In this document: positions 5,677-64,000 of the stretch, piece by piece | How positions within the stretch are numbered: the first letter of the stretch is position 1 | How the letters are laid out: every line of letters starts with the position of its first letter | Assembly (NCBI RefSeq): GCF_000143415.4 | Contig: NW_003314381.1 | Coordinates: 124,001-188,000 of the forward strand | From: Selaginella moellendorffii | Lineage: Eukaryota > Plantae > Lycopodiophyta | Length of the DNA: 64,000 bases | Direction of reading: 5' to 3' | Translations under genes and position numbers: made by a program | The notes under the pieces: generated by a model | The model's database searches: none | Told to the model about the DNA's origin: nothing | Seen by the model: the letters and a program-made list of their open reading frames with translations, nothing else

Positions 5677-7136
5677 TTAAGTTCTTTCGAATATAACCAC
5701 CTCTTGCTTAAGTTTATATTCCACCTTTTGCTTAAGTTCATATTCTAAGCTTAATATATAAACTACGACCACGAACTTAGCAAGGCAATCTGGCATGGGC
5801 GTGTGGGACGAGTGGAAGAGATCTCTCAAAGCAGACCTCAAGTCCGGTAATCCATCGTCAACGTCCATCCCGCACTCAAGTAAGACTCGACACACTCCAG
5901 CCTTCCGAGCGCTGCAAGCACTGCGGAGAACCGTATACCCCCCTGGTTCCACGTTGATATTGCTGGCCGCCATTCACAAGATCTCTTCATCCTCATTCGA
6001 GAAGGCCGCTCTGGCGAGCGGGCAAAAACCATCGTAAGTCGGCAGCGTTGGATCGGCCCCAGCGGCTATCAGCAGTTTGACACTCGCCAATTCTATTCGA
6101 TTCAGCGCAGCGATGAGGGGGAGCCAGCCCTCCGGCGAGGTCCGGCTGGGATCCATATGAGGGAGCTTGAGCAAGAGCTCCAGATGCTCGGGATCGCGAG
6201 CGTTGCACAAGTGCTTGCTGGTGAGAAGTCTCGACAGGCCGCGCCATGGGCTTGAAGAGCGTGACCAAGTCATCCATTTGATGGGCGCTGAACGGCCAGG
6301 TGGGTACGCCTGGAAAGAGAACCAACCATACGAGTGACAATGTAAAGGATGTGACAAGAAAGAATGTTACCTGACCAATGAAATATCTCATCTGGCGATG
6401 GAAAGTCTGGGTCTGCCCCGTTTTTTCCAAAAGATACTGGACAAATCCATCACCAGCAGCAGAAGCACCCAGTCGATGGTGCCGCTTCACTGCTGCAAGC
6501 AGCGGGGCCTCTCTGTTCTCACCTGGGACCAGCATGTTCAAGCTGTCTACAAGATCTATGGCTGCGTACGCAGTTTCCAAGTCCGACTCCGTAATGGCTT
6601 GCACGAGTCGCGCCATTCTCTTGCCGAGGGTCAGAGCCCCGATCTCCCATCCTCGACCGCACAGCTGCGACAAGATGAGCCTGAAACCCGGTAGGCGAGG
6701 AACGAACGCTCCCACGTCGATCGATATTGGTGACTCGAGCGCAAGTAGCTCCTCGCCTTGGTGGTCGTAGACAAGAGCGCAAGGACTTGGAAAAACCAGA
6801 GCAATGGTCACCGCTCCGGTAGACTTTGCGTGAAGCTGCACTAGCTCTTTGCCGCCGCTGCCCTCTCCTGGGGCAAACACGACAACGAAGCTCATGAGGT
6901 TGGCTTGTGGTTGCTCCTCTTCATCTGCGCTAGAATGGTGAGCGTCGTCTACAATAGTGAACACGGGAGCCAGCACACTATCTCCTCTACGAATGGGCTC
7001 ATCATCGTGTGAGCACTTATGACCACGAAAGATCATTCATCGCTTTCCGCCTCTTACGGTAGTTGTGCGTGGAGACCCAAAACTGACTGTCTGCCATGCC
7101 TCTCATTAGCACGATTGGATCACGGAGTGATTGCAT
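5677..7136 (-). pseudogene. Ankyrin-repeat protein pseudogene (unit 1)
   Basis: Ankyrin-like motifs (APLLAAV...YLLE-NGADPD; WLPLIAAL...VKLLIAAGADPT; VCRVLLECGMDVD) and a 61-bp GT-AG intron at 6310-6370. Relative to the copy at 53576-54419 there are 2-bp frameshifts at ~7020 and 6421-6426, plus an in-frame TGA at 5974-5976. Start position is approximate. Confidence 0.7.
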
Positions 7137-7329
7137 CCTGTCATCCTCGACCTGCACACAAGTTCATGAGAGATTCGCTAACATATGCAAACATCACCTC
7201 AGAGTTGCTCCCCGGCTTTCCCCTCGGCCGCTGTCGCTTCATCGTAATCCCAAACCTAAAATGAAGGATAGCAAGCATAGTTTTTAAAGGTTTATAGGTC
7301 CTTGACTTGCTTGTTCTTGAGATGTTTCA

Positions 7330-8300
7330 GCGTGCCATGAATCTTATAAACTTCAAAGGTGGCATTGCGCTTGTTTATGATGGAGCGTGCGTATTGGCAA
7401 CAAAACTCTCCTGGAAGGTATAGGTGATGTCGAGGGGTGGCAAAATGCGCTATTGTTTTTGCTTGTGAAGGAACACTTCCATGTGGCTCTTTGGCAAGGC
7501 TGCCAAAGGTTTTCTCAATTTAATGGAGGATTTATTGGAATTGTCTCCATGTTCCTCACCTGCAATTTCAGAAGTTTGCCAATTTCCATTGTTTTCATAT
7601 TGTGTATGAGCTTGGATCATATGGAAGAGATAAACATAAGTGTACAATTTAAGGGTTTATTTATCCAGTTTTACAACTATCTGTCTGTGTATTCTCTTGA
7701 TTCACTTGAGACAAATGTCCTTCTTAGATGATACATGACTACCTGTAGCCCAAAAATTCTCCACCAGGCCCTTTGTCAATTGCGGTACTCAATCACTCCT
7801 TTGCTTATGACCATCTAGTGCCTCTCTACAACTTATGATCCTTATCATCTTCCTCCTTGCTCATGCAGCTGGTAGGTTTCTTCTATGAATCCCAAGAACA
7901 TTTGCAAGAGTAGTGTTTGGAATGTTGTCACGACCAATGATCATGGAAGAATTGCTCTCTTTGCAACTAGATGATCACATGAACGTGCTCTCTTCATTAG
8001 TCGAAGTGATTGATGAATGTTGACGCACGTTTTCTTCTTAGAGTTGCTTGTCAAAACATTTCCTAGTAGACTAATTATTGGGCAAATCACTTTGTTGTGG
8101 CACGCTAGAAAGCTATGGATGATCAATGATTTTGTATATGAATCATCCTGTCAAATAAGTCCCCTATATCTTTGACCTTTCTTCTTACTTTTATCATACT
8201 CATATACTCATGATGAAGTATTCCCGGCTTGATATAGGTGATCTTTGGTTTTATCATGATCACTTGAAGTAGTGGCCATCCTGAAGACAAATTAAGCACT
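7330..8300 (-). mobile_element. Decayed DNA-transposase-like remnant (possibly Sola-type); homologous copies at 40159-40840 and 54600-55600
   Basis: Broken ORF ...LANVLGIHRRNL...LVENFWATGSHVSSKKDIC... resembles the N-terminus of Sola-like transposases. Many stops and frameshifts; family assigned by motif recall only. Confidence 0.35.
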
Positions 8301-8339
8301 TTGGTTAGATATGAAAGTAATTAGAAAAAATATGTATTG

Positions 8340-8830
8340 TTGTTGCACCTCTTGTTATTGCTGCTACTAAGCTCACTGGCCTAGAAGGAGTAGGGCTGTC
8401 AGGCATGATCCAGCTACTACTTGATAGGCACGATCTTATTGCTGCTAACTAATTGCTACTGCTCCCTTGGTTGTTGCTACTACTGCAAATTGCTGCCACT
8501 GCTGCTTGCTATCCACTGCTACTGCTTCTTGCTGCCCTTGCCATTGGTGCTACTAGTGTTGCTACTTGCTGTTCCTGCTGCTTTTTCTTGCTACTGCTGC
8601 CATTGTTGGTGTTGCTGCTTACTGTTGCTGTTGATGTTGATGCTATTTCTTGCTTGCCATCAATGCCGCTATTGCATATTGTTGCCCTACTACGCTTGTA
8701 TTGGCCATTGCTATTGGTGTTGCTACTGGTGCTGGTGCTGCTCCTTGCTACCACCACTATTGCTAGTGTTGATGCTTGCCCCACTGTCGCTGCTACTTGC
8801 TGCTTTCTACTGTTGCCTCGATCACACACT
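8340..8830. repeat. CTG/TTG-rich low-complexity tract, part of the tandem unit (also ~40900-41520 and ~55650-56290)
   Basis: Degenerate (tgc/tgt/tac)n triplets giving L/C-rich spurious ORFs. Confidence 0.8.
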
Positions 8831-10403
8831 AAGATGCTCCATTTCTAAACCATAGCCGAATCAATCCACAAATGTAAGCAAGGTGATGGTAAGTAGAAGG
8901 AAGAGGGGAGGAGAAGAGGAGGATTGGGAAGATGAGCACTGCATCTAAGCTGTCCCATGACAATGCTCTACACCTTCCATGTTCATAAGCGATAATCCAA
9001 GGAATTCCCAAGTTTGTGAAATTTAGAAAATTTCAAGTTTATGCAATCTAAGAAATATTCTCTTTTACCAAATCAATAAGCAATCAATGTATTTTTGGGC
9101 ACTGCCTGAGGTGGTGATGTGGCCTGCTATATGGTTCCTGTAGGTTAAGGTAAACAAGAACCATAGCATTTGGGGGAATATTAAATTTTTTATTTCATCA
9201 CTTCTTAAGTAGCCTTTAGTTTTTCATTAGTTTTTGTTGTTCTGCATTAAAATTTAGCATAGTTTTCCACATAAGACTTTTTTTAAATTTGAAAATTGCA
9301 ACACTAAACCTCTATATTGTAGAATTAATCTTCCACCACCCAGAAGCTTGGATTTGTACTTTGGAATTTCTTGTGGGATATACTCCTTAGTTTATTCAAC
9401 ATTTTTCAATCTACCTCAATAAGTTCCTTGTTCTTTATGTTATTAACATCTGCAATCTTTTATTTTTGTCTTTCATTAAGCATCTAGAGATCTTGCAAGG
9501 GTTAGGTCTCCTGGAGCATCACATAAGGATAACCTTACAGTTTTGAGGCCTAGGTCATGATCCGACATTAGAATGCCCTCTATATAAATGTGAAGCGTCA
9601 TTGGGTGGTATAAGTTTTCTACTCACTGTTGTGGACCATAGTGCATGACCCACTCAAGTGCCAGAAGCAACATAACACTTCATCTTTGTACATCTGGTTC
9701 TTGATGTCTTGAGAATGCTCTACTACTATGTTCTCATAAGTTGAGGTGGGGTAGTACATGCCCACACTGGCAACAGCTAAGAGAGAAGGTTTTTCAGCTA
9801 GCAAGCACACTTTTAATGCCTAATTGATGCACAAAAACCACAAATGACTCCTCATGGCCACAAAAAACAAAAGGTGGAGGCATAGCATTGTAAAGCCTTC
9901 TACTTAATCCAGTGGGCAACATTTGCCTCAGGACCTCAGGACCTCCCTATTGGGCAAATGTGGTGAAAGTGGCTGGCTCTAGAGGAACTGTGCATGATGT
10001 CTTCAGCTATGCATTGCCAACGCCCCTATACCACATCCCAAAGACATGATCTGAGACATTGGCTGCAGTCATACAACACAGGAAGTAGAGAAGAGGGATT
10101 GCTAGATTGCCTGGCACCTCCCCCCCACCCCCCATATAAGGCCCTGTTCCACCACTAAAAGTCAGCCCTCTAGCTCCTCTAACCTAATTATGTTTCAGTT
10201 GGAAAGTCAAGCAGTAGAAACGAGCCAGATGTTCACTCCCAGATGACAAGAGTGAGAGACATAATAGAGACGATAAGAGACAATGTACTGTAAGAACTCT
10301 AAACCATGCTACCGGTATATCCCCAAAACATTATTTTCAAGGATAACCAAGTGGAACTGGAGCAACAACTTCAACTTTGCGTCTTACAACTTCAAGGGCA
10401 CAG

Positions 10404-10571
10404 TGAAGAGAAGAAGAGCGGAAGCTACGATGGTGGATGACTCTCAGGATAATCGTATATATCATAGCTATATATACATGATGAAGAGACACGCCTCTAG
10501 CCTACACTTGGATCAGTGAAGTGGCACTCCTGCCACCTAGGATCATGTCATAGAGAGCGTATACCTCAACA
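10404..10571. mobile_element. 168-bp solo LTR, specific to unit 1
   Basis: TG...CA ends, flanked by the 5-bp target-site duplication CACAG (10399-10403, 10572-10576), internal TATATA. Empty site 'ggacacaggtgc' is present in unit 3 at ~50590. Confidence 0.75.
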
Positions 10572-11561
10572 CACAGGTGCAATGCACTCATAATTTGTTG
10601 GTACTGCTTTCTTCTACAGGCTGCTACTGCTTTGTTTCCCAGGCTTACAGATCATAGCCCGGTCAATTACTTGTCCGGCTTGGGCCTGCTTTGCTCGCTG
10701 AAAAGGACATCTTTGACGAGGTGTTTGAACTGGCCAAAGAGTACTTTAATTAGGGAGACCCAACATCACATACACTTGAGATTCTAAACCTGAAATTAAG
10801 AGTTTATTTTGTCTACAACCAAGTGACCAAAGAGTTTTGTCTGAAATTCTTCCTCTGAAATATATTTTTTGCAGCAGCACCTAGCAAGAGCTCCTCGCGC
10901 ATCACATGGGCTACGTGGGAGTAAACATGGAAGTTCTCGTGGATTGCCGCAACACCGTCTTTGCGAAAGGCCTTACATCACTGGAGGAGCTCTGGTGGTG
11001 GTGTTTTGGACGCCATGGGTTCTTAACTCAATGTACTCTGAAACGGAGATTGATATTGTCAAAGGGAACCTGCAGACAATGTAAACTCCCCAGCCCAAGC
11101 CGGACGGCATTCAGGGCTATGATCTGCAAGGAACAAAACACCAAAGCCATGTCTCAACGAAAATACCCACTGCAGTAAATTTTGACAGTTTGATAAATTC
11201 TAGGGCTCGCGAGCAACAGCGACAGCACTCGCAGGAAAACAAAGCTTTGAACCCTATGCGCATCTTTGAGGATGGCCAAAGAGCAACACACTTGCTTTTT
11301 TGGTTCTAAACCGGTGTTATCTTAAAAATTAAGAGATTTTGTCTGACTTTGCTTTTCAGAAGTAAAGAGTTTTGCCTGAAATTCTTCCTTTGAAATACTT
11401 TTTTGTCTTGTGATAATTTTATTAACTTTTTAATGAGTTAATAATAATTTTATTCAGTGAGTATTACCAATAGACCTTTCTCCTTGTATATTTCTTGGCG
11501 GGTGCTACCCAGGCATTATATAGCTTACACAGCCCTGGAGAAACATAGAAGAAGATCCATC

Positions 11562-12608
11562 ATGGGAGCCTCCTCTATCCTTAGCATTTTTGAGGGCGCC
11601 AAAAGCTTTTACATACCACCGCACAGCTCTTATCATGTTGATTTGAATCCTGCTTATGATGCAAAGTTGGATGCTGAAATTGACAAATGGTGTATGGATT
11701 TTTTGAACCTGCATGATCTCACTGATCACAAGACTCAGTTTGCCATTCAGAGCAAGCTTGGAAAACTTGCAGGCTTTGCATACCAAGCCATTTCTTCAGA
11801 GAGATTGAGTCCCATCGCAAAATTCTTTTGCTGGTTGTTTCTTGCAGATGATTTTATGGACGATCCTTCTGTCCCTGTCTCTGACCTGAAGAATGCCACA
11901 CTTGCATACAAGCTCATCTTCAAAAACGACTATGATCAAGCCATAACTCTGGTGGAAAGTAAAGGCCTTCTGCGGCAAATGGGGATGCTTAACGATGTCT
12001 ACACTGATCTAAAGGGTTTCATGAATCCTGGACATAAGACCCGGTTTTCGAAATCCATGATTGATGTGCTCGACATGTTTGAGGTGGAATCAAGTTGGCT
12101 TCACAAGACACTGGTTCCCAACTTTGAGATTTATATGTGGATGAGGGAGGTAACAGCTGGGGTTATCCCTTGCATGGTGGCAATGGACTTCCTTAATAAT
12201 TTTGGGCTGGAAGAGGAAGGAGTGCTAGACGATCCCCATATTCAAACGCTGGAAGTGATTGCAAATCGCCATTCGTTCCTAGCCAATGACATGGTCTCCT
12301 TCAAAAAGGAATGGGCTTGTGAACAGTACCTCAATTCTGTGGCACTGGTTGGTTACAGTAGCAACTGTGGCTTAAACGAGGCAATGGAGAAAGTTGCACA
12401 AATGGTTCAGGATTTGGAGAAAGAGTTTGCTGACATCAAACAAAAGGTTCTCTCAAACAAGGACTTGAACAAGGGAAATGTCATGGGGTATGTGCAAAGC
12501 TTGGAGTATTTCATGGCTGCAAATATAGAGTTTAGCTGGATCTCTGCGAGATATCATGGGGTGGGATGGGTTTCACCAGCTGAGAAATATGGTACCTTTG
12601 AGTTCTAG
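11562..12608 (+). CDS. MTPSL: Microbial terpene synthase-like protein, copy 1 (348 aa, intronless)
   Basis: Class I terpene cyclase motifs DDFMDD, R-sensor WMREVTAG, NSE triad NDMVSFKKE and terminal SARY. AATAAA follows the stop. Confidence 0.92.
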   Translation: MGASSILSIFEGAKSFYIPPHSSYHVDLNPAYDAKLDAEIDKWCMDFLNLHDLTDHKTQFAIQSKLGKLAGFAYQAISSERLSPIAKFFCWLFLADDFMDDPSVPVSDLKNATLAYKLIFKNDYDQAITLVESKGLLRQMGMLNDVYTDLKGFMNPGHKTRFSKSMIDVLDMFEVESSWLHKTLVPNFEIYMWMREVTAGVIPCMVAMDFLNNFGLEEEGVLDDPHIQTLEVIANRHSFLANDMVSFKKEWACEQYLNSVALVGYSSNCGLNEAMEKVAQMVQDLEKEFADIKQKVLSNKDLNKGNVMGYVQSLEYFMAANIEFSWISARYHGVGWVSPAEKYGTFEF

Positions 12609-12920
12609 TTTGCTTCTACTTGCATTAGAAGCTGGTGCTTAAAATAAAACTGATACTCATACAATTGGTGAGTATGAACAATAATATTTTGAATTTCTCA
12701 TACAACTGTTGAGTAATATATTTTCATTTCTTTCTCCACTTTTTTCTTTCCGTACTAGACATTTACTTTTTGATACAACAAAAGCTTAGCACCACAAGTC
12801 TAGCAAAAAAATAGAGAGAACTACGTTAGATATTTCCAGAGCTTACTTGGAGACTGGCAAGCATCTTCATTTCTTTCTCCACTTTTTCCTTTCAGTACTA
12901 GACATTTACACAACAAAAGC

Positions 12921-15900
12921 TTAGCACCACGAAGTCTAGCAAAAAAAGAGAGAGAACTGCGTTAGAAATTTCCACAGCTTACTTGGAGACTGGCAAGCAT
13001 CTTCAGAGCCGCGTCTATCTTTGCAGACTTCCTCGGCTTCTCCTGCGAAGTTTCCACAAGTGATTCTTCTCCAAAAGTCACCCTTACTTCAGTTGTGGTC
13101 GCCTCTGTCCGGAAGAAACTGACTTTCATGCCTTTTCTCGCGCAAAGCTCCATAAGAATGCGCACAGGATGGAAACGTAGCGTCGCTGGAGTGACCAAAG
13201 GCGATAACAAAGGCAGCACCACTCTCCACAACTTCTCCAAATCGAAGTTAGTGTCCACAAAGATGGCACCGGTTATGCTTTCAAGTAAGTCTCCAAGCAC
13301 CTGAGAAAAGAGAGGCCAGAATGTAGAGACGACAACCGGAATATGTTTACGTACCTTTGGGGACGACAAGTCGTCGAAGCATGAAGCGTCTGGTTTTTCC
13401 TTCACGTTTTGCACGAACTTTCGGATCTCGCAGTCAAGTTCCACCGAGCCATGCTGAAGATGCTGATGTAAGCCGTGCCTCACAACCAGCCGAGCAAACC
13501 ATTTGTTGTTCACGGCTGCAGACCGCAAGTCTGTGAGTGTTCCTGGAGGTAATCCTGGATGAGTCTCGAAGAGGTGGCGGGATACAAGGAAGTCCAGGAC
13601 GCCATCGCCAAGGAACTCTAGCCTCTGTATTTGTTTTCGATTAGAAAAAAAGCCCAGCTGATAAACCAAGGAACTTACCTGATAGCAGAGCAAGCAGTTC
13701 GGTTGAGATGCGTGAGTTATAGCTTCCACCAAGAGGCTCCTGTTTTGAAATTTATACTGCAGCTTATGCTCTAAAGACTCCAACGAGGCCTGGAGATGTT
13801 GAAACGATTCAGCCGGCAGGGAAGCTTGGCGAGCCGAGGCAAGCAAGCCTATGTCGAATTCTATGTCAATGCCGAGCTGTTTCATAAGCTCCATGGCGCT
13901 CGGAGGTCCAGACGTGGCCAAGTATGCACCGATAAGGGCCTCTACAACGTCGGCGAGAGCTTTCCTTCGAATCCCCCGATGGCCGTTGGCACACGATGAA
14001 AAATAATTTTCCTCGTTTTCATAGCTCCCCTGCTGGTGCCTACATTTTGATGAATCAGAGGTAAGCATGCCCGGGCCAGTCCAGTTGGAAGGATTGAATT
14101 CTTCGTCGCGTATGTATTCCTGCAAGGCAACGTTGAACATTTACACTACAGGAAGAAAGATCGCGCATACCGCAATGCCAGATGATTTTGCCAACTGATG
14201 TAGCGCTGCATTACAAGTAGCGCGAGACCTTCTCGCACTGAGCTGGCCTTCGTGTTTCTTATCGTAGACCAGGAACAGCTTTTGAGTCACGACGTATTTG
14301 AGAAACGAGTCCCCTAGAAGCTCCAAACTCTCATATGAGAACTCTTCGTGACATTTTTTGCTGGTAATTGCTTCGAGGATCTGGAAAACCATCTCACCAC
14401 TAAGATTCATTTTCAAGGATAAAGATGAATACCTTCGCTGCAGGAATCCATGGCCACAGTGGTGAGCGCAACTGTATGGCACAGACGGTCGAAGTAAACT
14501 GGTGAAGAAACGAAGGGACGAAGTATAACGATCGAATTAGTCCGGACTTAATCTCTAGGCACAGGCACAACTCAGGTGGTAGCTCTACAAAACTTTCTTC
14601 TTGTCTAGAACCTGCAACATAAACTCCGACACTATAAATTGTAATTTCTAAGCAAATATCGAGTTTTCACCATGATCTTCCTTGGGTCTTATGAGGAGAT
14701 TATGAAAAGCATGCGTTGGCTTGGCTTTCAGCAATGGCTGATCTGGAAGCCGTAACGTCCTTTGATACCTGCAAAAACGTGAGCTTGGTGAGAGAAGGTA
14801 GGCACAGGCTGCGATAGACGCTCACTTGTCTTTGTAATAATCTATGTACGTGAAGCCCCTCTTCGGTAGTAGTGATGCCGCAGTAAAATTCTCTAGAACC
14901 CCTGTGACACAGAAAAGCCTGCCATTGTGCACGGTAGCTACGACCATGTCCTGGAGCGCAGAAGAATGTACGTAGCCATTAGCAGTGCAGAGCATGTCCG
15001 CGTGCGTCTTCTCCCCCACACCATCCCCATCTATTGGAGAAGATGGTGAGAAATTACTACAAAGTGTCCTGTATACCCCCGCAGTCGCATGAACACTCGT
15101 CCAATCAATACTGTCGTTGTCATCATGCACAGGTAGCAGAAGAAACGCTTGAGATTTGTTCCAGAGGATTTCTTGAGGACTTCCCGAGCAGCGTGCCAAA
15201 CGGTTGAAAGCTCCGTTGAGCAGTAGCTCTTGATATGCCTTGGCTGCCTTTACCTGTATCAGAAGAAAGACGTGCCTTTATCAATCGTGTCTCCTATTCT
15301 TAATGAACAAAATCCTTCGTACCTGATTGGCATCCAGCTGAATTGGCCCGACGCGATGCACTCTAGCGTTGACAACTCTATTTCTTGAGAACAGGGTCAC
15401 TTCAGAATCGGTTACTTCTGCGTCAATGACGCAATTTACCAGAAATCCAAAGTTCGAGTATGTTCGTGATTCAGGTGGCTCAATCACGAAGCAGATTTTA
15501 TAAAATTGCAACTGCACCTCTGACTCGTTAAACACCCAGCTTCCCTCGAAAATGAGTGGCTTTGCAGTCGAGAAGATCTCCTTGCGTTTTCCTGCAATCC
15601 GCGCGTCATTAATGGCCAAGCAAACTTAATAGAATAGTCGAATACCTGATTCATTCTTCCGCATCGACTGGTCTTCTTCATCGAAATCGTCAACATCTGG
15701 GCAAAGCGTGTCAGGTCTAACTTCTCCCATGTCATAAAGTTTCCGGCAAGCTTGCAAACACGCTGCTTTTTTCGCGAGCTGTTCTGTACGTCTCAGAGGA
15801 CCTTCTACTGAACGCAGAGGAGCGTTGGGTGGAAATTCCACAGTGCAGACGAACGAATCTTTGAACGAAAACTTTGGTTTTGCATTGTAGTACCTGCGGC

Positions 15901-16980
15901 ACAGAAGATAAGCATAAGAGAGATAGACGAAAGAAATACCTGTCACCAAGACGAGCACAATACTCGTGAATGAAGCTCACGCTGTCCTGCGAACTTTTAC
16001 AAGCACCTGATTCCACACGGAAAAACTCCAGGTCACCTTCTGGAGGTGCCTCTCTCGTAATATCCATATAATTTCGGAAGATTACTTGATCTTCCACCAC
16101 TCTTTCGCTTGTACACAACTGGTTAAACAGGTTCAGCTGCTCTACATTCCCCCTGTACGTATCAGATCCATGTTTAGAATGCAATTACAAAGGACAAACT
16201 ATTTACGTTTCCAGAAGCCATACATAAGTTGATGATAATCGGTTTCGAGCACGTCCTCGGGATTGAACATGGCTTTGCAAAGTTTGGCATACGTCAAATC
16301 TGATTACACCGCAGCATGCCTGGACATCAAGACCTTCTTCTGCAACTGAGGTCGCTATTAGCAGATTAAGCTACAAGATATACAAGGAACGTCACACATA
16401 AAAAAGCGTAAGAACTACCAACCTTGCCACCTGCAAAAGAGTCTAGAACCTCCTGCTGCTGGGTTGGATTTCTTGCATCCGTATCACGCACACCAGTCAT
16501 CTAATCACAATGGAGATGAGAGAGAAACGAAAGCTGAGATATGAGCTTGGCTAAGGCCATGGCCACAATCACACGTTCCACAAAGACAATGCAACGCATG
16601 TTTGTAATGCCCCTGAAACATGATATAAGAAAAACTTCCAGGGAGGGCAAAACTAACCTCAATCTTTCAAGCACATCCAATAGTACCAGTACTTTCGGGC
16701 TTAATGTTCCTGAAGTCATTTCCTCTAAGGTCGGATAAGAGCGTGAAGATACTGATTGTGTGTTTGAATGGTTTAGACAAACAAAAACAAAAACAGAAAA
16801 GAAAAGAAAAGAGAGGTATTGAAGAAACATTTTGTAAGAAACACTCTTTCAAGCTTGTTTTCACCTCCTCCTCCTCCAATGAGACATCTGGCTTCCATTT
16901 TAAATGAAAATGGGGAGAGTACCCATGAGGCTTGCGTAAGGCCATGGTGTTCTGAAATGTTATCCCAAATGTAAGCCATA
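12921..16980 (-). pseudogene. DCL3: Dicer-like (DCL3-type) copy 1: helicase-C, DUF283, PAZ, RNase IIIa/b, dsRBD; 5'-truncated and with a nonsense codon
   Basis: RCIVFVERV, LLIATSVAEEGLDV, VQSRGRAR, SVSFIHEYC (DUF283), ESLELLGDSFLK/KALADVVE, RLEFLGD/VLGDLLES, HPVRILMELC. In-frame TAG at 16501-16503 (LHCD*MTG). The DEAD N-terminal exons are replaced by LTR sequence beyond ~16990. DCL3 subtype is inferred from the ESLE motif and single dsRBD. Confidence 0.85.
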
Positions 16981-52665: not shown

Positions 52666-52809
52666 AATAAAACTGATACTCATACAATTGGTGAGTATGA
52701 ACAATAATATTTTGAATTTCTCATACAACTGTTGAGTAATATATTTTCATTTCTTTCTCTACTTTTTTCTTTCCGTACTAGACATTTACTTTTTGATACA
52801 ACAAAAGCT

Positions 52810-53575
52810 TAGCACCACAAGTCTAGGAAAAAAAATAGAGAGAACTGCGTTAGATATTTCCAGAGCTTACTTGGAGACTGGCAAGCATCTTCAGTGCCGC
52901 GTCTATCTTTGCAGACTTCCTCGGCTTCTCCTGCGAAGTTTCCACAAGTGATTCTTCTCCAAAAGTCACCCTTACTTCAGTCGTGGTCGCCTCTGTCCGG
53001 AAGAAACTGACTTTCATGCCTTTTCTCGCGCAAAGCTCCATAAGAATGCGCACAGGATGGAAACGCAGCGTCGCTGGAGTGACCAAAGGCGATAACAAAG
53101 GCAGCACCACTCTCCACAACTTCTCCAAATCGAAGTTAGTGTCTACAAAGATGGCACCCTTTCAAGTAAGTCTCCAAGCACCTGAGAAAAGAGAGAGAAG
53201 ACCACCGGAAGATGTCTACGTACCTTTGGGGCCGACAAGTCTTCGAAGCATGAAGCGTCTGGTTTTTCCTTCACGTTTTACACGAACTTTCGGATCTCGC
53301 AGTCAAGTTCCACCGGGCCATGCTGAAGATGCTGATGTAAGCCGTGCCTCACAACCAGCCGAGCAAACCATTTGTTGTTCACGGCTGCAGACCGCAAGTC
53401 AGTGAGTGTTCCTGGAGGTAATCCTGGATGAGTCTCGAAGAGGTGGCGGGATACAAGGAAGTCCAGGACGCCATCGCCAAGGAACTCTAGCCTCTGTATT
53501 TGTTTTCGATTAGAAAAAAAGCCAAGCTGATAAACCAAGGAACTTACCTGATAGCAGAGCAAGCAGTTCGGTTGA
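52810..53575 (-). pseudogene. DCL3: Dicer-like copy 3 remnant (RNase IIIb plus dsRBD)
   Basis: RLEFLGD retained, but there is a TAA at 53278-53280 and a 7-bp deletion at ~53158. Confidence 0.85.
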
Positions 53576-54419
53576 AAGAGAACCAACCATACGAGTGACA
53601 ATGTAAAGGTTGTGACAAGAAAGAAATGTTACGTGACCAGTGAAAAATCTCATCCGGCGATGGAAAGTCTGGGTCTGCCCCGTTTTCCAAAAGATACTGG
53701 ACAAATCCATCACCAGCAGCAGAAGCACCCAGTCGATGGTGCCGCTTCACTGCTGCAAGCAGCGGGGCCTCTCTGTTCTCACCTGGGACCAGCATGTTCA
53801 AGCTGTCTACAAGATCTATGGCTGCGTACGCAGTTTCCAAGTCCGACTCCGTAATGGCTTGCACGAGTCGCGCCATTCTCTTGCCGAGGGTCAGAGCCCC
53901 GATCTCCCATCTTCGACCGCACAGCTGCGACAAGATGAGCCTGAAACCCGGTAGGCGAGGAACGAACGCTCCCACGTCGATCGATATTGGTGACTCGAGC
54001 GCAAGTAGCTCCTCGCCTTGGTGGTCGTAGACAAGAGCGCAAGGACTTGGAAAAACCAGAGCAATGGTCACCGCTCCGGTAGACTTTGCGTGAAGCTGCA
54101 CTAGCTCTTTGCCGCCGCTGCCCTCTCCTGGGGCAAACACGACAACGAAGCTCATGAGGTTGGCTTGTGGTTGCTCCTCTTCATCTGCGCTAGAATGGTG
54201 AGCGTCGTCTACAATAGTGAACACGGGAGCCAGCACACTATCTCCTCTACGAATGGGCTCATCATCGTGTGAGCACTTATGTGACCACGGAAGATCATTC
54301 ATCGCTTTCCGCCTCTTACGATAGTTGTCCGTGGAAACCCAAAACTGACTGTCTGCCATGCCTCTCATTAGCACGATTGGATCACGGAGTGATTGCATCC
54401 TGTCATCCTCGACGTGCAC
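53576..54419 (-). pseudogene. 5' part of the ankyrin-repeat gene (unit 4) fused to the DCL remnant
   Basis: Highly similar to 6313-7160, with an open frame through YLLENGADPD. The 3' exons are deleted. Confidence 0.75.
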
Positions 54420-57400
54420 ACAAGTTCATGAGAGATTCGCTAACATATACAAACATCACCTCAGAGTTGCTCCCCGGCTTTCCCCTCGGCCGCTGTCGCT
54501 TCATCGTAATCCCAAACCTAAAATGAAGGATAGCTTTTGTAGAGCTAAAAGGCCAAGCATAGTTTTTCTAGGTTTATAGGTCCTTGAACAGAATTTACTT
54601 GCTTGTTCTTGAGATGTTTCAGCGTGCCATGAATCTTATAAACTTCAAAGGTGGCATTGCGCTTGTTTATGATGGAGCGTGCGTATTGGCAACAAAACTC
54701 TCCTGGAAGGTATAGGTGATGTCGAGGGGTGGCAAAATGCGCTATTGTTTTTGCTTGCCAAAGAACACTTCCATGCGGCTCTTTGGCAAGGCTGTCAAAG
54801 GTTTTCTCAATTTAATGGAGGATTTATTGGAATTGTCTCCATGTTCCTCACCTGCAATTTCAGAAGTTTGCCAATTTCCATTGTTTTCATATCTTGGATC
54901 ATATGGAAGAGATAAACATTAAGTGTACAATTTAAGGGTTTATTTATCCAGTTTTACAACTATCTGTCTGTGTATTCTCTTGATTCACTTGAAACAAATG
55001 TCCTTCTTAGATGATACATGACTACCTGTAGCCCAAAAATTCTCCACCAGGCCCTTTGTCAATTGCGGTACTCAATCACTCCTTTGCTTATGACCATCTA
55101 GTGCCTATCTACAAGTTATGATCCTTATCATCTTCCTCCTTGCTCATGCAGCTGGTAGGTTTCTTCTATAAATCCCAAGAACATTTGCAAGAGTAGTGTT
55201 TGGAATGTTGTCACCACCAATGATCATGGAAAGAATTGCTCTCTTTGCAACTAGATGATCACATGAACGTGCTTTCTTCATTAGTTGAGGTGATTGATGA
55301 ATGTTGACGCACATTTTCTTCTTAGAGTTGCTTGTCAAAAAATTTTCTAGTAGACTAATTATTGGGCAAATCACTTTGTTGTGGCACACTAGAAAGCTAT
55401 TAATGATCAATGCTTTTGTATATGAATCATCCTTGCAAGTGATGTCAAACAAGTCCCCTATAGCTTTGGCCTTTCTTCTTACTTTTATCATACTCATATA
55501 CTCATGATGAAGTATTCCTGGCTTGATATAGGTGATCTTTGGTTTTATCATGATCACTTGAAGTAGTGGCCATCCTGAAGACAAATTAAGCACTTTGGTT
55601 AGATATGAAAGTAATTAGAAAAAAATACTATAAATATCTTACTAGATATGTGTTGTTGGTGCTACTACTTGTTGGTGCTTCTAGTTGCTGTTGCACCTCT
55701 TGCTTATTGCTGCTACTAAGCTCACTGGCCTAGAAAGAGTAGGGCTGTCAGGCATGATTCAGCTACTACTTGATAGGCACGATCTTATTGCTGCTAACTA
55801 ATTGCTACTAGTGTTAAAGCTTGGCCGGTTGCTCCCTTGGTTGTTACTACTACTGCAAATTGCTGCCACCGCTGCTTGCTATCCACTGCTCCTGCTTCTT
55901 GCTGCCCTTGCCATTGGTGCTACTAGTGTTTATACTTGTTGTTGTTGCTGCTTTTTCTTGCTACTGCTGTCATTGTTGGTGTTGCTGCTTGCTTGCGCCC
56001 ACTGTTGCTGTTGGTGCTATTTCTTGCTTGCCATCAATGCCACTATTGCATATTGTTGCCACTACTGTTGCTGCCCCTACTGCTGTTGCTGTTGGTCTTG
56101 CTCTTTGCCACTGCTGGTGCTACTAGTGCTGTTGCTTACTACCAATACTGCTTTGCTTGTCACGGCCACTGCTGTTGGTGTTGCTACTGGTGCTGGTGCT
56201 GCTCCTTGCTACCACCGCTATTGCTAGTGTTGATGCTTGCCCCACTGTTGCTGCTACTTGCTGCTTTCTACTGTTGCCTCAATCATACTCTAAGATGCTC
56301 CATTCTAAACCATAGCCGAATCAATCCACAAATGTAAGCAAGGTGATGGAGGAGGGGAGGAGAAGAGGAGGATTGGGAAGATGAGCACTGCATCGAAGCT
56401 GCCCCATGACAATGCTCCATACCTTCCATGTTCATAAGTTGTAATTCAAGGAATTCCCAAGTTTGTGAAATTTAAAAAATTTCAAGTTTGTGCAATCTAA
56501 GAAATATTCTCTTTACCAAATCAATAAGCAATCAATGCATGTTTCTGGGCACTTGAGGTAAACAAAAACCAAGTAAGCCTCAGTTCATGTTTGTTTCAAT
56601 TTACTTAGTTCATCTTTTAAATGTAGAGTGGGAAATATTAATCTTTGCTTTCATCACTTCCTAAATAGCCATTGGTCCTTCATTAACATTTGTTATTTTC
56701 CACTAAGACTTAACATAATTTTCCATATATGATTTTGAACACTCAACCTTTATATCGTAGAATTAATCTTCCACCACTTTATAGTTATTAACTCCTTTAA
56801 AGACTGGTGAAAGCTTGGATTTGTACTTTGGAATTTCTTGTGGGACAAACATTTACTCAACCTTTTCCTTCCACCTCAATAAATTCCTTGCTTTTTACAT
56901 TGTTAATATTTGCAATCTTTTATTTTTTCTCCATTTTTCTCATCATGTTTTAACTTGTGTATAAGGGTCTTTAGTAGGGCATTAACCTATATTATTTGCC
57001 CTTCCAAAGCATTTAATCAAGCAATGAGCACACCTCCAGATTCATATTTAGAATTTTTTCACTTTTAAATTCATATTTGGAAGTTTTTTCATTGGAATCC
57101 TCCTTATACAAAGATTCTTTATCCATTAGTTCTTGTTTGACCGAAAGCTCCATCTTTATAAGCAATTTAATATTTGTTTTTGCTCATTTATGCCTTGTCT
57201 TACCCATCTTTTAGTGATTTGTCTTTATCATTCATTGTAATTGGGAAAATAGTTTCGATACTAAATTGCAAGCCATAATTTTTCTTCTCCAATTTATCAA
57301 TTTACTTTGCCTTTTTAACCACTTTTGCCTTAGCCATAGTTAAGTTACATTCCACTTCTATTGTATTAGCTCTTATTTAATTCTACCTAATTTCAATAAG

Positions 57401-59501
57401 TCAATATACAGAGTATTAACCATCTTTTCATGGATTCCACTCCACCTGAGCCAAAAGCACCACATTTGATTTCCCTTCCAAGAATAGAAGTTTTTTTTGA
57501 ACACCTCCTTAAAAGGCTTCCCTAGCAAGTCTAGCAAATGTTGGCAACATATTTAAAGCTAAAGTAGGTGGTCGCACTTTAGGAGCACACTGGGCACCTT
57601 CACATAAAAAGAAACTCATGGTAGAAAGCTTAATTGGCTAGAAAGTGGCAAACAAAGGAAAAAAGAGGGGCCTCAAAAATCATAGCCTTTAACATGTGTT
57701 CCACAAAAACTACATAAACTATGGAGATTTAATGTGGGGGTAGTATAAAGACATTAGGTTTTCTACTCACTGTTGTGGACCATAGTGCATGACCCACTCA
57801 AGTGCCAGAAGCAACATAGCACTTCATTTTTATACATCCACTGCTTCTTGATGTCCTGAGAATGCTCTACTACTATGTTCTCATAAGTTGAGGTGGGGCA
57901 GTACATGCCCACACTGGCAACAGCTAAGAGAGAAGGTTTTTCAGCCAGCAAGCACACTTTTAATGCCTAATTGATGCACAAAAGCCACAAATGACTCCTC
58001 ATGGCCACAAAAAACAAAAGGTGGAGGCATAGCATTGTAAAGCCTTCTACTTAATCCAGTGGGCAACATTCGCCTCACGACCTCCCTATTGGGCAAATGT
58101 GGTGAAAGTGGCTAGCTCTAGAGGAACTGTGCATGATGTCTAGAGCTATGCATTGCCAACATCCCTATACCACATCCCAAAGACATGATCTAAGACATTG
58201 CAGCCATACATCACAATAAGTAGGAAAGGCATTGCTAGATTGCTCCCCACCCACACCCACCCCCCGGACTCAAGCTGCTGATGGGCTAGTCTCGGAGGTT
58301 AGGGTATATAAGGGCCTCTTCCACCACTAAAAGTCAGCCTGAATGCCCCCCCCCCCATAATAGCTCCTCTAACGTAATTGTGCTTCAGCTGGAAAGTGAA
58401 GTAGCAAAAAGGAGCCAGATGTTCACTCCTGGATGACAAGAGTGAGACATAATAGAGACAAAAAGAGACAATGTACTGTAAGAACTCTAAATGATGCTAC
58501 TGGTATATCCCCATAACATTATTTTCAAGGATAACCAAGTGGAACCAGGTTCTTCAACACGTAGAACTGGAGCAACAACTTCAACTTTGCATCTTAAAAC
58601 TTCAGCAATGCACTCATAATTTGTTGGTACTGCTTGCTTCTACAGGCTGCTGCTGCTTTGTTTCCCAGGCTTACAGATCATAGCCCGGCTTGGGCCTGCT
58701 TTGCTCGCTGAAAAGGACATCTTTGACGAGGTGTTTGAACTGGCCAAAGAGTACTTTAATTAGGGAGACCCAACATCACATACACTTGAGATTCTAAACC
58801 TGAAATTAAGAGTCTATTTTGTCTACAACCAAGTGACCAAAGAGTTTTGTCTGAAATTCTTCCTCGCGCATCACATGGGCTACGTGGGCGTAAACATGGA
58901 AGTCCTCGTGGATTGCCGCAACACCCTCTTTGCGAAAGGCTTACATCACTGGGTTGGAGGAGCTCTGGCGGTGGTGTTTTGGACGCCATGGGTTCTTAAC
59001 TCAATGTACTCTGAAACGGAGATTGATATCGTCAAAGGGAACCTGCAGACAATGTAAACTCCCGAGCCCAAGCCGGACGGCATTCAGGGCTATGATCTGC
59101 AAGGAACAAAACACCAAAGCCATGTCAAGCAAATTTTGACAGTTTGATAAATTCTAGGGCTCGCGAGCAACAGCAGCACTCGCGGAAAAACAAAGCTTTG
59201 AACCCTATGCGCATCTTTGAGGATGGCCAAAGGGCAACACACTTGCTTTTTTGGTTCTATCATAAAAATTAAGAGATTTTGTCTGACTTTGCTTTTCAGA
59301 AGTAAAGAGTTTTGCTTGAAATTCTTCCTTTGAAATACTTTTTTGTCTTGTGATAATTTTATTAACTTTTTAATGAGTTAATAATAATTTTATTCAGTGA
59401 ATATTACCAATAGATCTTTCTCCTTGTGTATTTCTTGGCAGGTGCTACCCAGGCATTATATAGCTTACACAGCCCTGGAGAAACATAGAAGAAGATCCAT
59501 C

Positions 59502-60548
59502 ATGGGAGCCTCCTCTATCCTTAGCATTTTTGAGGGCGCCAAAAGCTTTTACATACCACCGCACAGCTCTTATCATGTTGATTTGAATCCTGCTTATGAT
59601 GCAAAGTTGGATGCTGAAATTGACAAATGGTGTATGGATTTTTTGAACTCGCATGATCTCACTGATCACAAGGCTCAGTTTGCCATTCAGAGCAAGCTGG
59701 GAAAACTTGCAGGCTTGGCATACCAGGCCATTTCTTCAGAGAGACTGCGTCCCATGGCAAAATTCTTGTGCTGGTTGTATCTTGCAGATGATTTTATGGA
59801 CAATCCCTCTGTCCCTGTCTCGGACCTGAAGAATGCCACACTTGCATACAAGCTCATCTTCAAAAACGACTATGATCAAGCCATAACTCTGGTGGAAAGT
59901 AAAGGCCTTCTGCGGCAAATGGGGATGCTTAACGATGTCTACACTGATCTAAAGGGTTTCATGAATCCTGGACATAGGACCCGGTTTTCGAAATCCATGG
60001 TTGATGTTCTCGACATGTTTGAGGTGGAATCAAGTTGGCTTCACAAGACACTGGTTCCCAACTTTGAGATTTATATGTGGATGAGGGAGGTAACGGCTGG
60101 GGTTATCCCTTGCATGGTGGCAATAGACTTCCTTAATAATTTTGGGCTGGAAGAGGAAGGAGTGCTAGACGATCCCCATATTCAAACGCTGGAAGCGATT
60201 GCAAATCGCCATACGTTCCTAGCCAATGACATGCTGTCCTTCAAAAAGGAATGGGCTTGTAAACAGTACCTCAATTCTGTGGCACTGGTTGGTTACAGTA
60301 GCAACTGTGGCTTAAACGAGGCAATGGAGAAAGTTGCACAAATGGTTCAGGATTTGGAGAAAGAGTTTGCTGACATCAAACAGAAGGTTCTCTCAAACAA
60401 GGACTTGAACAAGGGAAATGTCATGGGGTATGTGCAAGGCTTGGAGTATTTCATGGCTGGAAATATAGAGTTTAGCTGGCTCTCTGCGAGATATCATGGG
60501 GTGGGATGGGTTTCACCAGCTGAGAAATATGGTACCTTGGAGTTCTAG
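59502..60548 (+). CDS. MTPSL: Microbial terpene synthase-like protein, copy 4 (348 aa)
   Basis: DDFMDN, WMREVTAG, NDMLSFKKE, SARY; uninterrupted ORF. Confidence 0.92.
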   Translation: MGASSILSIFEGAKSFYIPPHSSYHVDLNPAYDAKLDAEIDKWCMDFLNSHDLTDHKAQFAIQSKLGKLAGLAYQAISSERLRPMAKFLCWLYLADDFMDNPSVPVSDLKNATLAYKLIFKNDYDQAITLVESKGLLRQMGMLNDVYTDLKGFMNPGHRTRFSKSMVDVLDMFEVESSWLHKTLVPNFEIYMWMREVTAGVIPCMVAIDFLNNFGLEEEGVLDDPHIQTLEAIANRHTFLANDMLSFKKEWACKQYLNSVALVGYSSNCGLNEAMEKVAQMVQDLEKEFADIKQKVLSNKDLNKGNVMGYVQGLEYFMAGNIEFSWLSARYHGVGWVSPAEKYGTLEF

Positions 60549-60851
60549 TTTGCTTCTACTTGCATTAGAAGCTGGTGCTTAAAATAAAACTGATACTGGT
60601 GAGTATGAACAATAATATTTTGAATTTCTCATACAACTGTTGAGTAATATATTTTCATTTCTTTCTCCACTTTTTTCTTTCCGTACTAGACATTTACTTT
60701 TTGATACAACAAAAGCTTAGCACCACAAGTCTAGCAAAAAAATAGAGAGAACTACGTTAGATATTTCCAGAGCTTACTTGGAGACTGGCAAGCATCTTCA
60801 TTTCTTTCTCCACTTTTTCCTTTCAGTACTAGACATTTACACAACAAAAGC

Positions 60852-63800
60852 TTAGCACCACGAAGTCTAGCAAAAAAAGAGAGAGAACTGCGTTAGAAAT
60901 TTCCACAGCTTACTTGGAGACTGGCAAGCATCTTCAGAGCCGCGTCTATCTTTGCAGACTTCCTCGGCTTCTCCTGCGAAGTTTCCACAAGTGATTCTTC
61001 TCCAAAAGTCACCCTTACTTCAGTTGTGGTCGCCTCTGTCCGGAAGAAACTGACTTTCATGCCTTTTCTCGCGCAAAGCTCCATAAGAATGCGCACAGGA
61101 TGGAAACGTAGCGTCGCTGGAGTGACCAAAGGCGATAACAAAGGCAGCACCACTCTCCACAACTTCTCCAAATCGAAGTTAGTGTCCACAAAGATGGCAC
61201 CGGTTATGCTTTCAAGTAAGTCTCCAAGCACCTGAGAAAAGAGAGGCCAGAATGTAGAGAAGACCACCGGAATCTGTGTACGTACCTTTGGGGCCGACAA
61301 GTCTTCGAAGCATGAAGCGTCTGGTTTTTCCTTCACGTTTTGCACGAACTTTCGGATCTCGCAGTCAAGTTCCACGGAGCCATGCTGAAGATGCTGATGT
61401 AAGCCGTGCCTCAGAACCAGCCGAGCAAACCATTTGTTGTTCACGGCTGCAGACCGCAAGTCTGTGAGTGTTCCTGGAGGTAATCCTGGATGAGTCTCGA
61501 AGAGGTGGCGGGATACAAGGAAGTCCAGGACGCCATCGCCAAGGAACTCTAGCCGCTGTATTTGTTTTCGATTAGAAAAAAAGCCCAGCTGATAAACCAA
61601 GGAACTTACCTGATAGCAGAGCAAGCAGTTCGGTTGAGATGCGTGAGTTATAGCTTCCACCAAGAGGCTCCTGTTTTGAAATTTATACTGCAGCTTATGC
61701 TCTAAAGACTCCAACGATGCCTGGAGATGTTGAAACGATTCAGCCGGCAGGGAAGCTTGGCGAGCCGAGGCAAGCAAGCCTATGTCGAATTCTATGTCAA
61801 TGCCGAGCTGTTTCATAAGCTCCATGGCGCTCGGAGGTCCAGACGTGGCCAAGTATGCACCGATAAGGGCCTCTACAACGTCGGCGAGAGCTTTCCTTCG
61901 AATCCCCCGATGGCCGTTGGCACACGATGAAAAATAATTTTCCTCGTTTTCATAGCTCCCCTGCTGGTGCCTACATTTTGATGAATCAGAGGTAAGCATG
62001 CCCGGGCCAGTCCAGTTGGAAGGATTGAATTCTTCGTCGCGTATGTATTCCTGCAAGGCAACGTTGAACATTTACACTACAGGAAGAAAGATCGCGCATA
62101 CCGCAATGCCAGATGATTTTGCCAACTGATGTAGCGCTGCATTACAAGTAGCGCGAGACCTTCTCGCACTGAGCTGGCCTTCGTGTTTCTTATCGTAGAC
62201 CAGGAACAGCTTTTGAGTCACGACGTATTTGAGAAACGAGTCCCCTAGAAGCTCCAAACTCTCATATGAGAACTCTTCGTGACATTTTTTGCTGGTAATT
62301 GCTTCGAGGATCTGGAAAACCATCTCACCACTAAGATGCATTTTCAAGGATAAAGATGAATACCTTCGCTGCAGGAATCCATGGCCACAGTGGTGAGCGC
62401 AACTGTATGGCACAGACGGTCGAAGTAAACCGGTGAAGAAACGAAGGGACGAAGTATAGCGATCGAATTAGTCCGGACTTAATCTCTAGGCACAGGCACA
62501 ACTCAGGTGGTAGCTCTACAAAACTTTCTTCTTGTCTAGAACCTGCAACATAAACTCCGACACTTTAAATTGTAATTTCTAAGAAAATATCGAGTTTTCA
62601 CCATGATCACCTTCTTGTTCCTTGGGTCTTATGGGGAGATTATGAAAAGCATGCGTTGGCTTGGCTTTCAGCAATGGCTGCTCTGGAAGCCGTAACGTCC
62701 TTTGATACCTGCAAAAACGTGAGCTTGGTGAGAGAATGTAGGCACAGGCTGCGATAGACGCTCACTTGTCTTTGTAATAATCTATGTACGTGAAGCCCCT
62801 CTTCGGTAGTAGTGATGCCGCAGTAAAGTTCTCTAGAACCCCTGTGACACAGAAAAGCCTGCCATTGTGCACGGTAGCTACGACCATGTCCTGGAGCGCA
62901 GAAGAATGTACGTAGCCATTAGCAGTGCAGAGCACGTCCGCGTGCGTCTTCTCCCCCACACCATCCCCATCCATTGGAGAAGATGGTGAGAAATTACTAC
63001 AAAGTGTCCTGTATACCCCCGCAGTCGCATGAACACTCGTCCAATCAATACTGTCGTTGTCATCATGCACAGGTAGCAGAAGAAACGCTTGAGATTTGTT
63101 CCAGAGGATTTCTTGAGGACTTCCCGAGCAGCGTGCCAAACGGTTGAAAGCTCCGTTGAGCAGTAGCTCTTGATATGCCTTGGCTGCCTTTACCTGTATC
63201 AGAAGAAAGACGTGCCTTTATCAATCGTGTCTCCTATTCTTAATGAACAAAATCCTTCGTACCTGATTGGCATCCAGCTGAATTGGCCCGACGCGATGCA
63301 CTCTAGCGTTGACAACTCTATTTCTTGAGAACAGGGTCACTTCAGAATCGGTTACTTCTGCGTCAATGACGCAATTTACCAGAAATCCAAAGTTCGAGTA
63401 TGTTCGTGATTCAGGTGGCTCAATCACGAAGCAGATTTTATAAAATTGCAACTGCACCCCTGACTCGTTAAACACCCAGCTTCCCTCGAAAATGAGTGGC
63501 TTTGCAGTCGAGAAGATCTCCTTGCGTTTTCCTGCAATCCACGCGTCATTAATGGCCTTGCAAACTTAATAGAATAGTCGAATACCTGATTCATTCTTCC
63601 GCATCGACTGGTCTTCTTCATCGAAATCGTCAACATCTGGGCAAAGCGTGTCAGGTCTAACTTCTCCCATGTCATAAAGTTTCCGGCAAGCTTGCAAACA
63701 CGCTGCTTTTTTCGCGAGCTGTTCTGTACGTCTCAGAGGACCTTCTACTGAACGCAGAGGAGCGTTGGGTGGAAATTCCACAGTGCAGACGAACGAATCT

Positions 63801-64000
63801 TTGAACGAAAACTTTGGTTTTGCATTGTAGTACCTGCGGCACAGAAGATGAGCATAAGAGAGATAGACGAAAGAAATACCTGTCACCAAGACGAGCACAA
63901 TACTCGTGAATGAAGCTCACGCTGTCCTGCGAACTTTTACAAGCACCTGATTCCACACGGAAAAACTCCAGGTCACCTTCTGGAGGCGCCTCTCTCGTAA
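60852..64000 (-). CDS. DCL3: Dicer-like (DCL3-type) copy 4, 3' part (DUF283, PAZ, RNase IIIa/b, dsRBD); continues beyond the window
   Basis: All RNase III catalytic acidic residues present and no lesions seen. The 5' end lies outside the window. Confidence 0.85.

Follow-up and report, generated by a model that had tools for sequence, protein, structure and literature searches.

The lycophyte Selaginella moellendorffii carries, on the 464-kb scaffold GL377685.1 (assembly GCA_000143415.2), a locus at which genes for microbial-type terpene synthase-like proteins (MTPSL) lie tail to tail with Dicer-like (DCL) sequences. The part of this scaffold analysed here, 64,000 nucleotides in length, is referred to as the window, and a w before a number denotes a window position. 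Self-BLAST resolves the window into four head-to-tail units, A to D, which start at about w9526, w34968, w50007 and w57755 and are 92–99% identical to one another in blastn alignments with gaps counted. Each unit holds one MTPSL on the plus strand: copy A (SELMODRAFT_429799) at w11562–12608, copy B, which is SmMTPSL1 (SELMODRAFT_429801), at w36610–37653, copy C at w51619–52665 and copy D at w59502–60548. Minus-strand open reading frames (ORFs) just 3′ of each MTPSL encode RNase III, dsrm, PAZ and Dicer_dimer domains (Pfam). The core common to the units is about 3.8 kb long, from 1.8 kb 5′ of the MTPSL ATG to DCL exon 20, and the complete gene pair is found in unit D only. The stop codons of the two convergent genes are separated by 353 bp in A, 188 bp in B, 184 bp in C and 344 bp in D; the longer distances in A and D are due to a tandem duplication of 136 bp that spans the stop codon and 3′ end of the DCL (w12723–13005 and w60654–60936; 2.0 copies with 89% matches in Tandem Repeats Finder), which is present in these two units only. 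The array, its gene positions and the loss of DCL 5′ regions and of parts of an ankyrin gene had been proposed in an original prediction made from the letters alone, and self-BLAST, Pfam, tblastn and exon projection bear all of these out; the measured 184–353 bp also lie near the predicted spacing of about 150–310 bp. The further proposal that every unit had kept its MTPSL together with the RNase IIIb/double-stranded-RNA-binding-domain (dsRBD) tail of the DCL stands as far as presence goes, but MTPSL C is frameshifted and the RNase IIIb motif of tail C is hit by a 7-bp deletion.

The S. moellendorffii assembly contains two haplotypes (PMC7801247; PMC3095285), and the second one, on GL377604.1, has a single unit between the same flanking genes in 27 kb of sequence with no N. 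The order in this single-copy state is PPIP5K (+), ankyrin gene (-), MTPSL (+), DCL3b (-), LEA_2, a gene of 241 amino acids (aa) and INO80; the segment is collinear with the left end of the window and with unit D, and the INO80 flanks of the two haplotypes are 98.75% identical. The MTPSL–DCL adjacency, which the original prediction had wished to see checked in the other haplotype, is present there once and with the MTPSL broken: this copy (about 8770–9810 in window-oriented haplotype-2 coordinates) has a 1-bp deletion in its ATG and a 5-bp deletion. It is thus a pseudogene, and the plant is heterozygous for three intact SmMTPSL1-type genes versus none.

Terpene synthase and Dicer-like copies

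The four MTPSL ORFs all match PF19086 (Terpene_syn_C_2) with E values from 4e-33 to 7e-38 (2e-35 for A, 7e-38 for B and 6e-35 for D), and Pfam found no match in them to PF01397, the N-terminal domain of plant terpene synthases. The metal-binding motifs DDxxD (DDFMD or DDFME) and NSE/DTE (NDMxSFKKE) are present in all copies, and the C-terminal RY pair is kept in A, B and D. Copy A has an intact ORF of 348 codons, to which the protein P0002 matches at 99.7%; copy B is intact and, over the common 312 residues, 100% identical to P0001 and P0003, the S. moellendorffii protein named ‘microbial Terpene synthase-like protein 1’; copy D is intact as well. Copy C has lost 9 and 12 bp in two in-frame deletions, and a further, frameshifting deletion of 10 bp near its 3′ end has taken away the C-terminus with the RY pair. 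On the array haplotype, three of the four synthases therefore have intact reading frames. Pairwise comparison of the copies gave dS values of 0.03–0.10 and dN/dS of 0.40–0.72, which points to relaxed or diversifying evolution and not to strong constraint. Eight other SmMTPSLs have been characterised (PMC7826640), and a literature search found no enzyme assay of SmMTPSL1. An exon-like block is kept 500–700 bp 5′ of each MTPSL ATG on the plus strand (w10878–11012, w35993–36190, w50897–51055 and w58953–58985); gene models of 412–472 aa take this block as an upstream coding exon, the continuous ORF alone being 347 aa. In P0003, the published model of SmMTPSL1, the first exon lies elsewhere, at w32441–32557 beside a 236-bp satellite, and this looks like a prediction artefact.

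The sole complete DCL gene is that of unit D, of which the window holds the 3′ part (w60893–64000, minus strand; part of exon 13 and exons 14–22), the remainder lying past the window end on the locus taken from GL377685.1 (L001; the locus from GL377604.1 is L002). L001 and w50686–64000 are 100% identical. The RefSeq protein P0158, mapped on L001 with an exact translation, gives a gene of 22 exons and 1389 aa, with introns of 45–72 bp that are GT-AG in 20 of 21 cases (the donor search accepted GC too). Direct reading found AT at the modelled donor of intron 16 (L001 14927–14983), and the exact boundary of this intron is therefore uncertain. Pfam recognises in P0158 a DEAD/ResIII domain (residues 11–178), Helicase_C (371–475), Dicer_dimer (546–618), PAZ (830–933), two RNase III domains and dsrm (1322–1382); this full Dicer architecture is that of copy D only and is lacking in fragments A, B and C.

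On sequence grounds, the full-length gene is assigned to the DCL3 clade and is called DCL3b. A quick FastTree analysis of 39 sequences, in which the branch of DCL3b is long and the outgroup sequences for DCL1 and DCL4 are unnamed, places it as sister of SmDCL3a with a support of 100, both of them inside a clade with the DCL3 proteins of Ginkgo, Pinus, Adiantum, Riccia and Amborella (support 99). This placement agrees with an earlier count of two DCL3 paralogues in S. moellendorffii (PMC4607528, Table 2). Cluster look-ups returned the family name ‘endoribonuclease Dicer homolog 3b’ and identified EFJ07436 with copy B, EFJ07437 with C and EFJ07438 with D. The best full-length matches bearing a family-level name were all DCL3 or Dicer homolog 3, several top matches being nameless, and in a PDB search Arabidopsis DCL1 outscored AtDCL3. 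A phmmer search with the 392-aa RNase III ORF against proteins found S. moellendorffii models at 85–98% identity and then none above 46%; an orthologue of DCL3b with more than 50% identity was not found in another species. The haplotype-2 allele (P0157 on GL377604.1) differs from copy D with a dN/dS of 0.18, and its exon 22 has one extra C in a C-run (aligned D position L001 about 16548); with the resulting frameshift the protein stops short of the dsRBD. In the RefSeq model P0155 this allele is read as intact, the JGI model P0157 follows the frameshift, and the extra C may be either a real truncation or a sequencing or assembly error.

The state of the three incomplete copies was read by projecting the exons of copy D, by tblastn with P0005 as query and by direct reading, and all of them are 98–100% identical to complete DCL3b. 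Fragment A (w12962–16910, minus strand) comprises the 3′ 110 bp of exon 9 and exons 10–22; its homology stops sharply at w16910, inside exon 9, so that exons 1–8 and most of exon 9, which correspond to the DEAD/ResIII lobe, are missing. Sensitive tblastn with four DCL queries found the helicase N-lobe (residues 1–303) neither in copy A and the 18-kb spacer next to it nor elsewhere in the window. Codon 408 of fragment A has been changed from TAT to the nonsense codon TAG (w16501–16503, direct reading). Fragment B (w37842–40156, minus strand; RefSeq XP_024521033.1, 664 aa; EFJ07436) comprises exons 16–22, which encode PAZ, RNase IIIa, RNase IIIb and the dsRBD, and has in common with fragment A a 9-bp in-frame deletion in exon 17. 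Fragment C (w52850–53575, minus strand; about 720 bp) is reduced to the last 28 bp of exon 20 plus exons 21 and 22, and the 7-bp deletion, at about w53158, takes part of its RNase IIIb ‘LLESITGA’ motif and shifts the frame.

When derived changes were polarised with the haplotype-2 allele, the fragment lineages showed 12 non-synonymous or nonsense changes versus 5 synonymous ones, and copy D showed 4 versus 9. The site patterns are also mosaic. A and B are identical over w13707–15276 (1.57 kb) although the B MTPSL is the most divergent one, B and C share a block at w12215–12325, and A shares w11759–11808 with haplotype 2. These patterns indicate gene conversion or recombination between the copies.

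Unit borders, chimeric models and spacers

The three unit borders all differ, the DCL being cut in exon 9, in intron 15 and in exon 20. In haplotype-2 coordinates the borders are 13983/18 kb of repeats/about 6540 (A to B), 12325/4157 and 10746/2706, and the window reads as 1–13983, 18 kb of repeats, about 6540–12325, junction J2, 4157–6964, a repeat called X with a nested Ty3 element, 6959–10746, junction J3 and 2706 onwards. J2 (w40156–40159) joins DCL intron 15 to sequence 5′ of the ankyrin gene (equivalent to w7629) through a 2-bp filler, and at J3 (w53574–53575) DCL exon 20 runs into the ankyrin gene itself, at a point inside it that corresponds to w6313, with a 2-bp microhomology; both are clean, non-homologous joins. 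Three different borders imply at least three events. An attempt to order the three junctions as successive sister-chromatid duplications yielded no simple order that gives the layout.

The ankyrin gene cut at J3 has its complete counterpart in the left neighbour of the array, ‘unit 0’ (w5677–7097, minus strand), where Ank_2 is found in the ORF w5974–6357 and residues 1–257 of P0043 map to w6311–7097; haplotype 2 has a collinear Ank_2 gene of 412 aa. The 5′ part of the unit-0 gene reappears at the C/D border as a fragment of 244 codons (w53628–54359, minus strand; 99.2% in tblastn with P0043). Further to the left lies the 3′ part of a PPIP5K-type (His_Phos_2) gene, from w1 to about w5650 on the plus strand as deduced from the haplotype-2 annotation, and no more than about 26 bp separate its end from that of the convergent ankyrin gene, which illustrates how tightly genes are spaced in this region.

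Since DCL3b and the ankyrin gene both lie on the minus strand, two of the borders set DCL 3′ exons behind an ankyrin-side 5′ region, and chimeric gene models result. At J3 the first 244 ankyrin codons stand ahead of DCL exons 21–22, and the JGI model EFJ07437 (347 aa, ‘DRBM domain-containing protein’) fuses this ankyrin 5′ fragment to the dsRBD part of DCL exon 22. At J2 a 30-nt ATG exon stands ahead of DCL exon 16 in XP_024521033.1, which RefSeq names ‘endoribonuclease Dicer homolog 3b’. This first exon (w40964–40993, minus strand; MPDS.TPSRP, followed by a GTGAGC donor) is conserved on the minus strand in unit 0 (about w8375–8404) and in unit C (about w55726–55755). It is located about 1.3 kb 5′ of the ankyrin ORF and probably belongs, as a 5′ exon that has escaped annotation, to the ankyrin-side gene.

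The A–B spacer (w16911–34967, about 18 kb) is non-coding and repeat-rich and has no homology to haplotype 2; Pfam found no domains in its ORFs or in those of the left flank. It contains the single assembly gap, one run of 100 N at w19424–19523. DCL-A homology ends 2.5 kb before this gap, at w16910; the sequence around the gap is a non-coding repeat, and neither a gene nor a reading frame crosses it. The flanks of the gap (w18889–19419 and w19526–19897) match a paralogous repeat (w30981–31511 and w31573–31944) in order and orientation, and in that repeat 61 bp take the place of the gap; the sequence is therefore probably continuous across the gap, and the missing stretch short. The join fits the other haplotype, where PPIP5K and INO80 likewise form the left and right flanks, and units B, C and D as well as J2 and J3 lie in gapless sequence. 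Repeat X was found by self-BLAST in three non-coding copies (w17712–20012; w29180–32031; w42728–43322 with w48913–50006); it holds 12/23-bp arrays (unit TCTCGGACTCCA) and adjoins unit borders, and it may be part of a degenerate element of about 12 kb, may have been carried along or may have aided the rearrangements. The 236-bp satellite (w32673–33615; 4.0 copies, 95% identity) lies just 5′ of unit B. The B–C spacer harbours a Ty3/gypsy long terminal repeat (LTR) retrotransposon on the plus strand (w43323–48911), with Pfam matches to gag, reverse transcriptase (RT), RNase H, integrase and chromodomain. The element is young and apparently intact: its ORFs encode gag, an 899-aa RT/RNase H/integrase protein and the chromodomain, its 389-bp LTRs are 98.7% identical with TG..CA ends, and it is flanked by the 5-bp target-site duplication GGAAC. 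At about w29765 the paralogous repeat still has the empty site.

Passengers, new genes or a coupled pair

The reading that we favour, with a probability of roughly 0.8, is that the SmMTPSL1 locus underwent a recent tandem segmental duplication on one haplotype only, in which the DCL fragments came along as hitch-hiking and for the most part non-functional passengers. The copies lie head to tail, novel end-to-start junctions were read at base level, and the single-copy state is present on GL377604.1. At least three separate rearrangements, each with its own border, would have taken the MTPSL count to four, with left-hand breakpoints in or upstream of the ankyrin gene and right-hand breakpoints each inside DCL3b, whose 3′ part would have been copied as a passenger. 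Right-hand breakpoints fall inside DCL3b because its stop is only about 190 bp from the MTPSL stop; sparing the DCL would need a breakpoint within the 184–353 bp between the stops, and retention of the tail is therefore expected and carries no functional signal. Later events would include the insertion of the Ty3 element and of other repeats, small inactivating deletions in MTPSL C and DCL fragment C, the nonsense mutation in DCL fragment A and gene conversion between copies. The duplications themselves would have arisen by non-homologous joining or template switching. The original prediction had larger units trimmed by deletions, which is possible, and direct non-homologous tandem duplication yields both clean junctions equally well.

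Two explanations had been offered for the pairing, DCL hitch-hiking on selection for terpene synthase copy number, or a coupled chemical-defence and RNA-silencing module. The hitch-hiking itself is supported by the three distinct cuts, by the single whole DCL, by the nonsense codon in A and the frameshift in C, and by the opposite balance of substitutions in the fragments (12:5) and in copy D (4:9). Selection for synthase copy number did not emerge from the data: one of the four MTPSLs is broken, dN/dS is 0.4–0.7, and the other haplotype has a single dead MTPSL. The module found no support, both partners being intact in unit D only and no inverted DCL copy being present.

Several observations weigh against the passenger reading. 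The Fisher test on the substitution classes is only marginal (p = 0.063); the passenger status of the fragments is inferred from sequence alone; the link from A to B crosses the scaffold gap and is the sole link resting on a scaffold join; no simple succession of duplications reproduces the layout, as mentioned above; and fragment B has a frame open over 654 codons with no stop or frameshift, is modelled by RefSeq, and keeps all the RNase III catalytic motifs, that is both signatures and the acidic residues (read in the sequence and by Pfam on P0159). This state of fragment B also favours exaptation, by which one or both junction chimeras would be working new genes run by a captured ankyrin-side promoter: a helicase-less ‘mini-DCL3b’ with PAZ, RNase IIIa/b and dsRBD from fragment B, and a protein with an ankyrin N-terminus and a dsRBD from fragment C. 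Such an outcome fits the duplication origin and conflicts only with the fragments being mere passengers, and the conserved ATG exon with its canonical GTGAGC donor upstream of fragment B, as well as the modelling of both B and C as genes by RefSeq and JGI, would agree with it. However, fragment B is so young that chance would be expected to leave its frame open (it has no private difference from A over the 1.57 kb), and its derived changes are 5 non-synonymous versus 4 synonymous. Fragment C, for its part, is without its RNase IIIb motif and is known as a gene from a predicted model only. Exact-protein look-ups (P0005, P0043 and P0159) and a homology search with P0159 returned only NCBI genome assembly records and no near-identical transcript-derived protein from the public collection. 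Exaptation is on these grounds unlikely.

A functional coupling would have MTPSL and DCL3b co-selected, their overlapping convergent 3′ ends giving antisense RNA that tunes either gene, and the DCL tail kept for that purpose. The stop codons are 184–353 bp apart in all four units, so the 3′ untranslated regions may overlap, and the near-identity of the fragments to complete DCL3b (98–100%) means that antisense read-through could act in trans. But tail retention is explained by geometry alone, the fragments decay (nonsense codon in A, 7-bp deletion in C), and the other haplotype keeps the pair with a dead MTPSL. Tight spacing is ordinary in this compact genome, the PPIP5K and ankyrin ends at this very locus being a case in point. 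Self-BLAST found no inverted DCL copy able to form a hairpin in the window, and Rfam and tRNA scans of the whole window gave no matches. The DCL3 locus of Diphasiastrum has no informative neighbours and no MTPSL within 10 kb of the gene, a weak test given that this gene is not an orthologue of DCL3b. Coupling thus appears highly improbable. The two ideas can be taken together as a wider proposal, that Dicer-derived genes made at the breakpoints (the ‘mini-DCL3b’ or the ankyrin-N-terminus and dsRBD protein) are in use, or that MTPSL read-through antisense tunes the complete DCL3b in trans, and this is something of a long shot; if the antisense version were true, terpene synthase dosage would be tied to silencing capacity on the array haplotype only.

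An assembly artefact, in which the Sanger assembly of 2010 would have produced some of the units by joining haplotigs wrongly or by collapsing or expanding repeats, might be suspected from the presence of both haplotypes in the assembly (PMC7801247), from the one scaffold gap between A and B and from the identity of their DCL parts over 1.57 kb, but it is very hard to credit: two haplotypes cannot yield four different copies, every unit is marked by substitutions and indels of its own and by a unique border, B, C, D, J2 and J3 are gapless, the second haplotype was assembled separately and without gaps and has private mutations of its own, and the PPIP5K and INO80 flanks match the haplotype-2 order.

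Under the passenger reading, the locus is a base-resolved example of lineage-specific growth of an enzyme family in a compact plant genome, in which tandem duplication, gene conversion, decay and the insertion of a transposon have all left their mark on one haplotype, whereas its homologue retains one dead copy. The three-versus-none heterozygosity of predicted working SmMTPSL1-type synthases matters when MTPSL genes are linked to terpene profiles. Dicer-like counts in Selaginella are also open to inflation by annotated fragments such as the 664-aa ‘Dicer homolog 3b’ and the ‘DRBM domain-containing protein’. Moreover, with its two natural chimeras the locus lends itself to asking whether helicase-less Dicer pieces are tolerated or used.

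Comparison with known systems

Part of what is described here is already known: GenBank holds the genes, terpene synthases are well known to expand in tandem, and an earlier count included the second DCL3 paralogue. A literature search that included the locus tags did not find the DCL passenger fragments, the two chimeras or the haplotype contrast described. The microbial-type (MTPSL) family of S. moellendorffii was reportedly treated by Li et al. in PNAS in 2012. Terpene synthase tandem arrays, those of the S. moellendorffii MTPSLs included, grow by head-to-tail local duplication with birth and death of copies, and the present array resembles them in its three intact copies and one broken copy, in its moderately elevated dN/dS and in the identity of copy B with the named SmMTPSL1. 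It differs from them in that the units carry an unrelated neighbour, DCL3b, which is whole only in D, and in that the array is confined to one haplotype, the MTPSL of the other haplotype being dead. Tandem duplication of terpene synthases has been surveyed elsewhere (PMC6681836).

With regard to the Dicer-like gene, S. moellendorffii is reported to show no prominent 24-nt peak (PMC5569507). Copy D has the DEAD/ResIII, Helicase_C, Dicer_dimer, PAZ, two RNase III and single dsRBD regions expected of the DCL3 clade, whereas it is short (1389 aa) and divergent, only 43–46% identical to SmDCL3a, and sits on a long branch. The plant DCL3 clade comprises the makers of 24-nt small interfering RNA (PDB 7vg2).

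Junctions of tandem duplications can give birth to chimeric genes. The likeness at this locus is that both breakpoints lie in genes on the same strand, so that the promoter and 5′ part of one are joined to the 3′ exons of the other; the difference is that the chimeras are here predicted from sequence and that one of them would be a helicase-less Dicer. Fragment B, in turn, has the layout of the Dicer of Giardia and of plant mDCL (DCL1b), with PAZ and two RNase III domains and no helicase. Unlike these, it is a very recent truncation of DCL3b at a duplication breakpoint and lies outside the old mDCL lineage.

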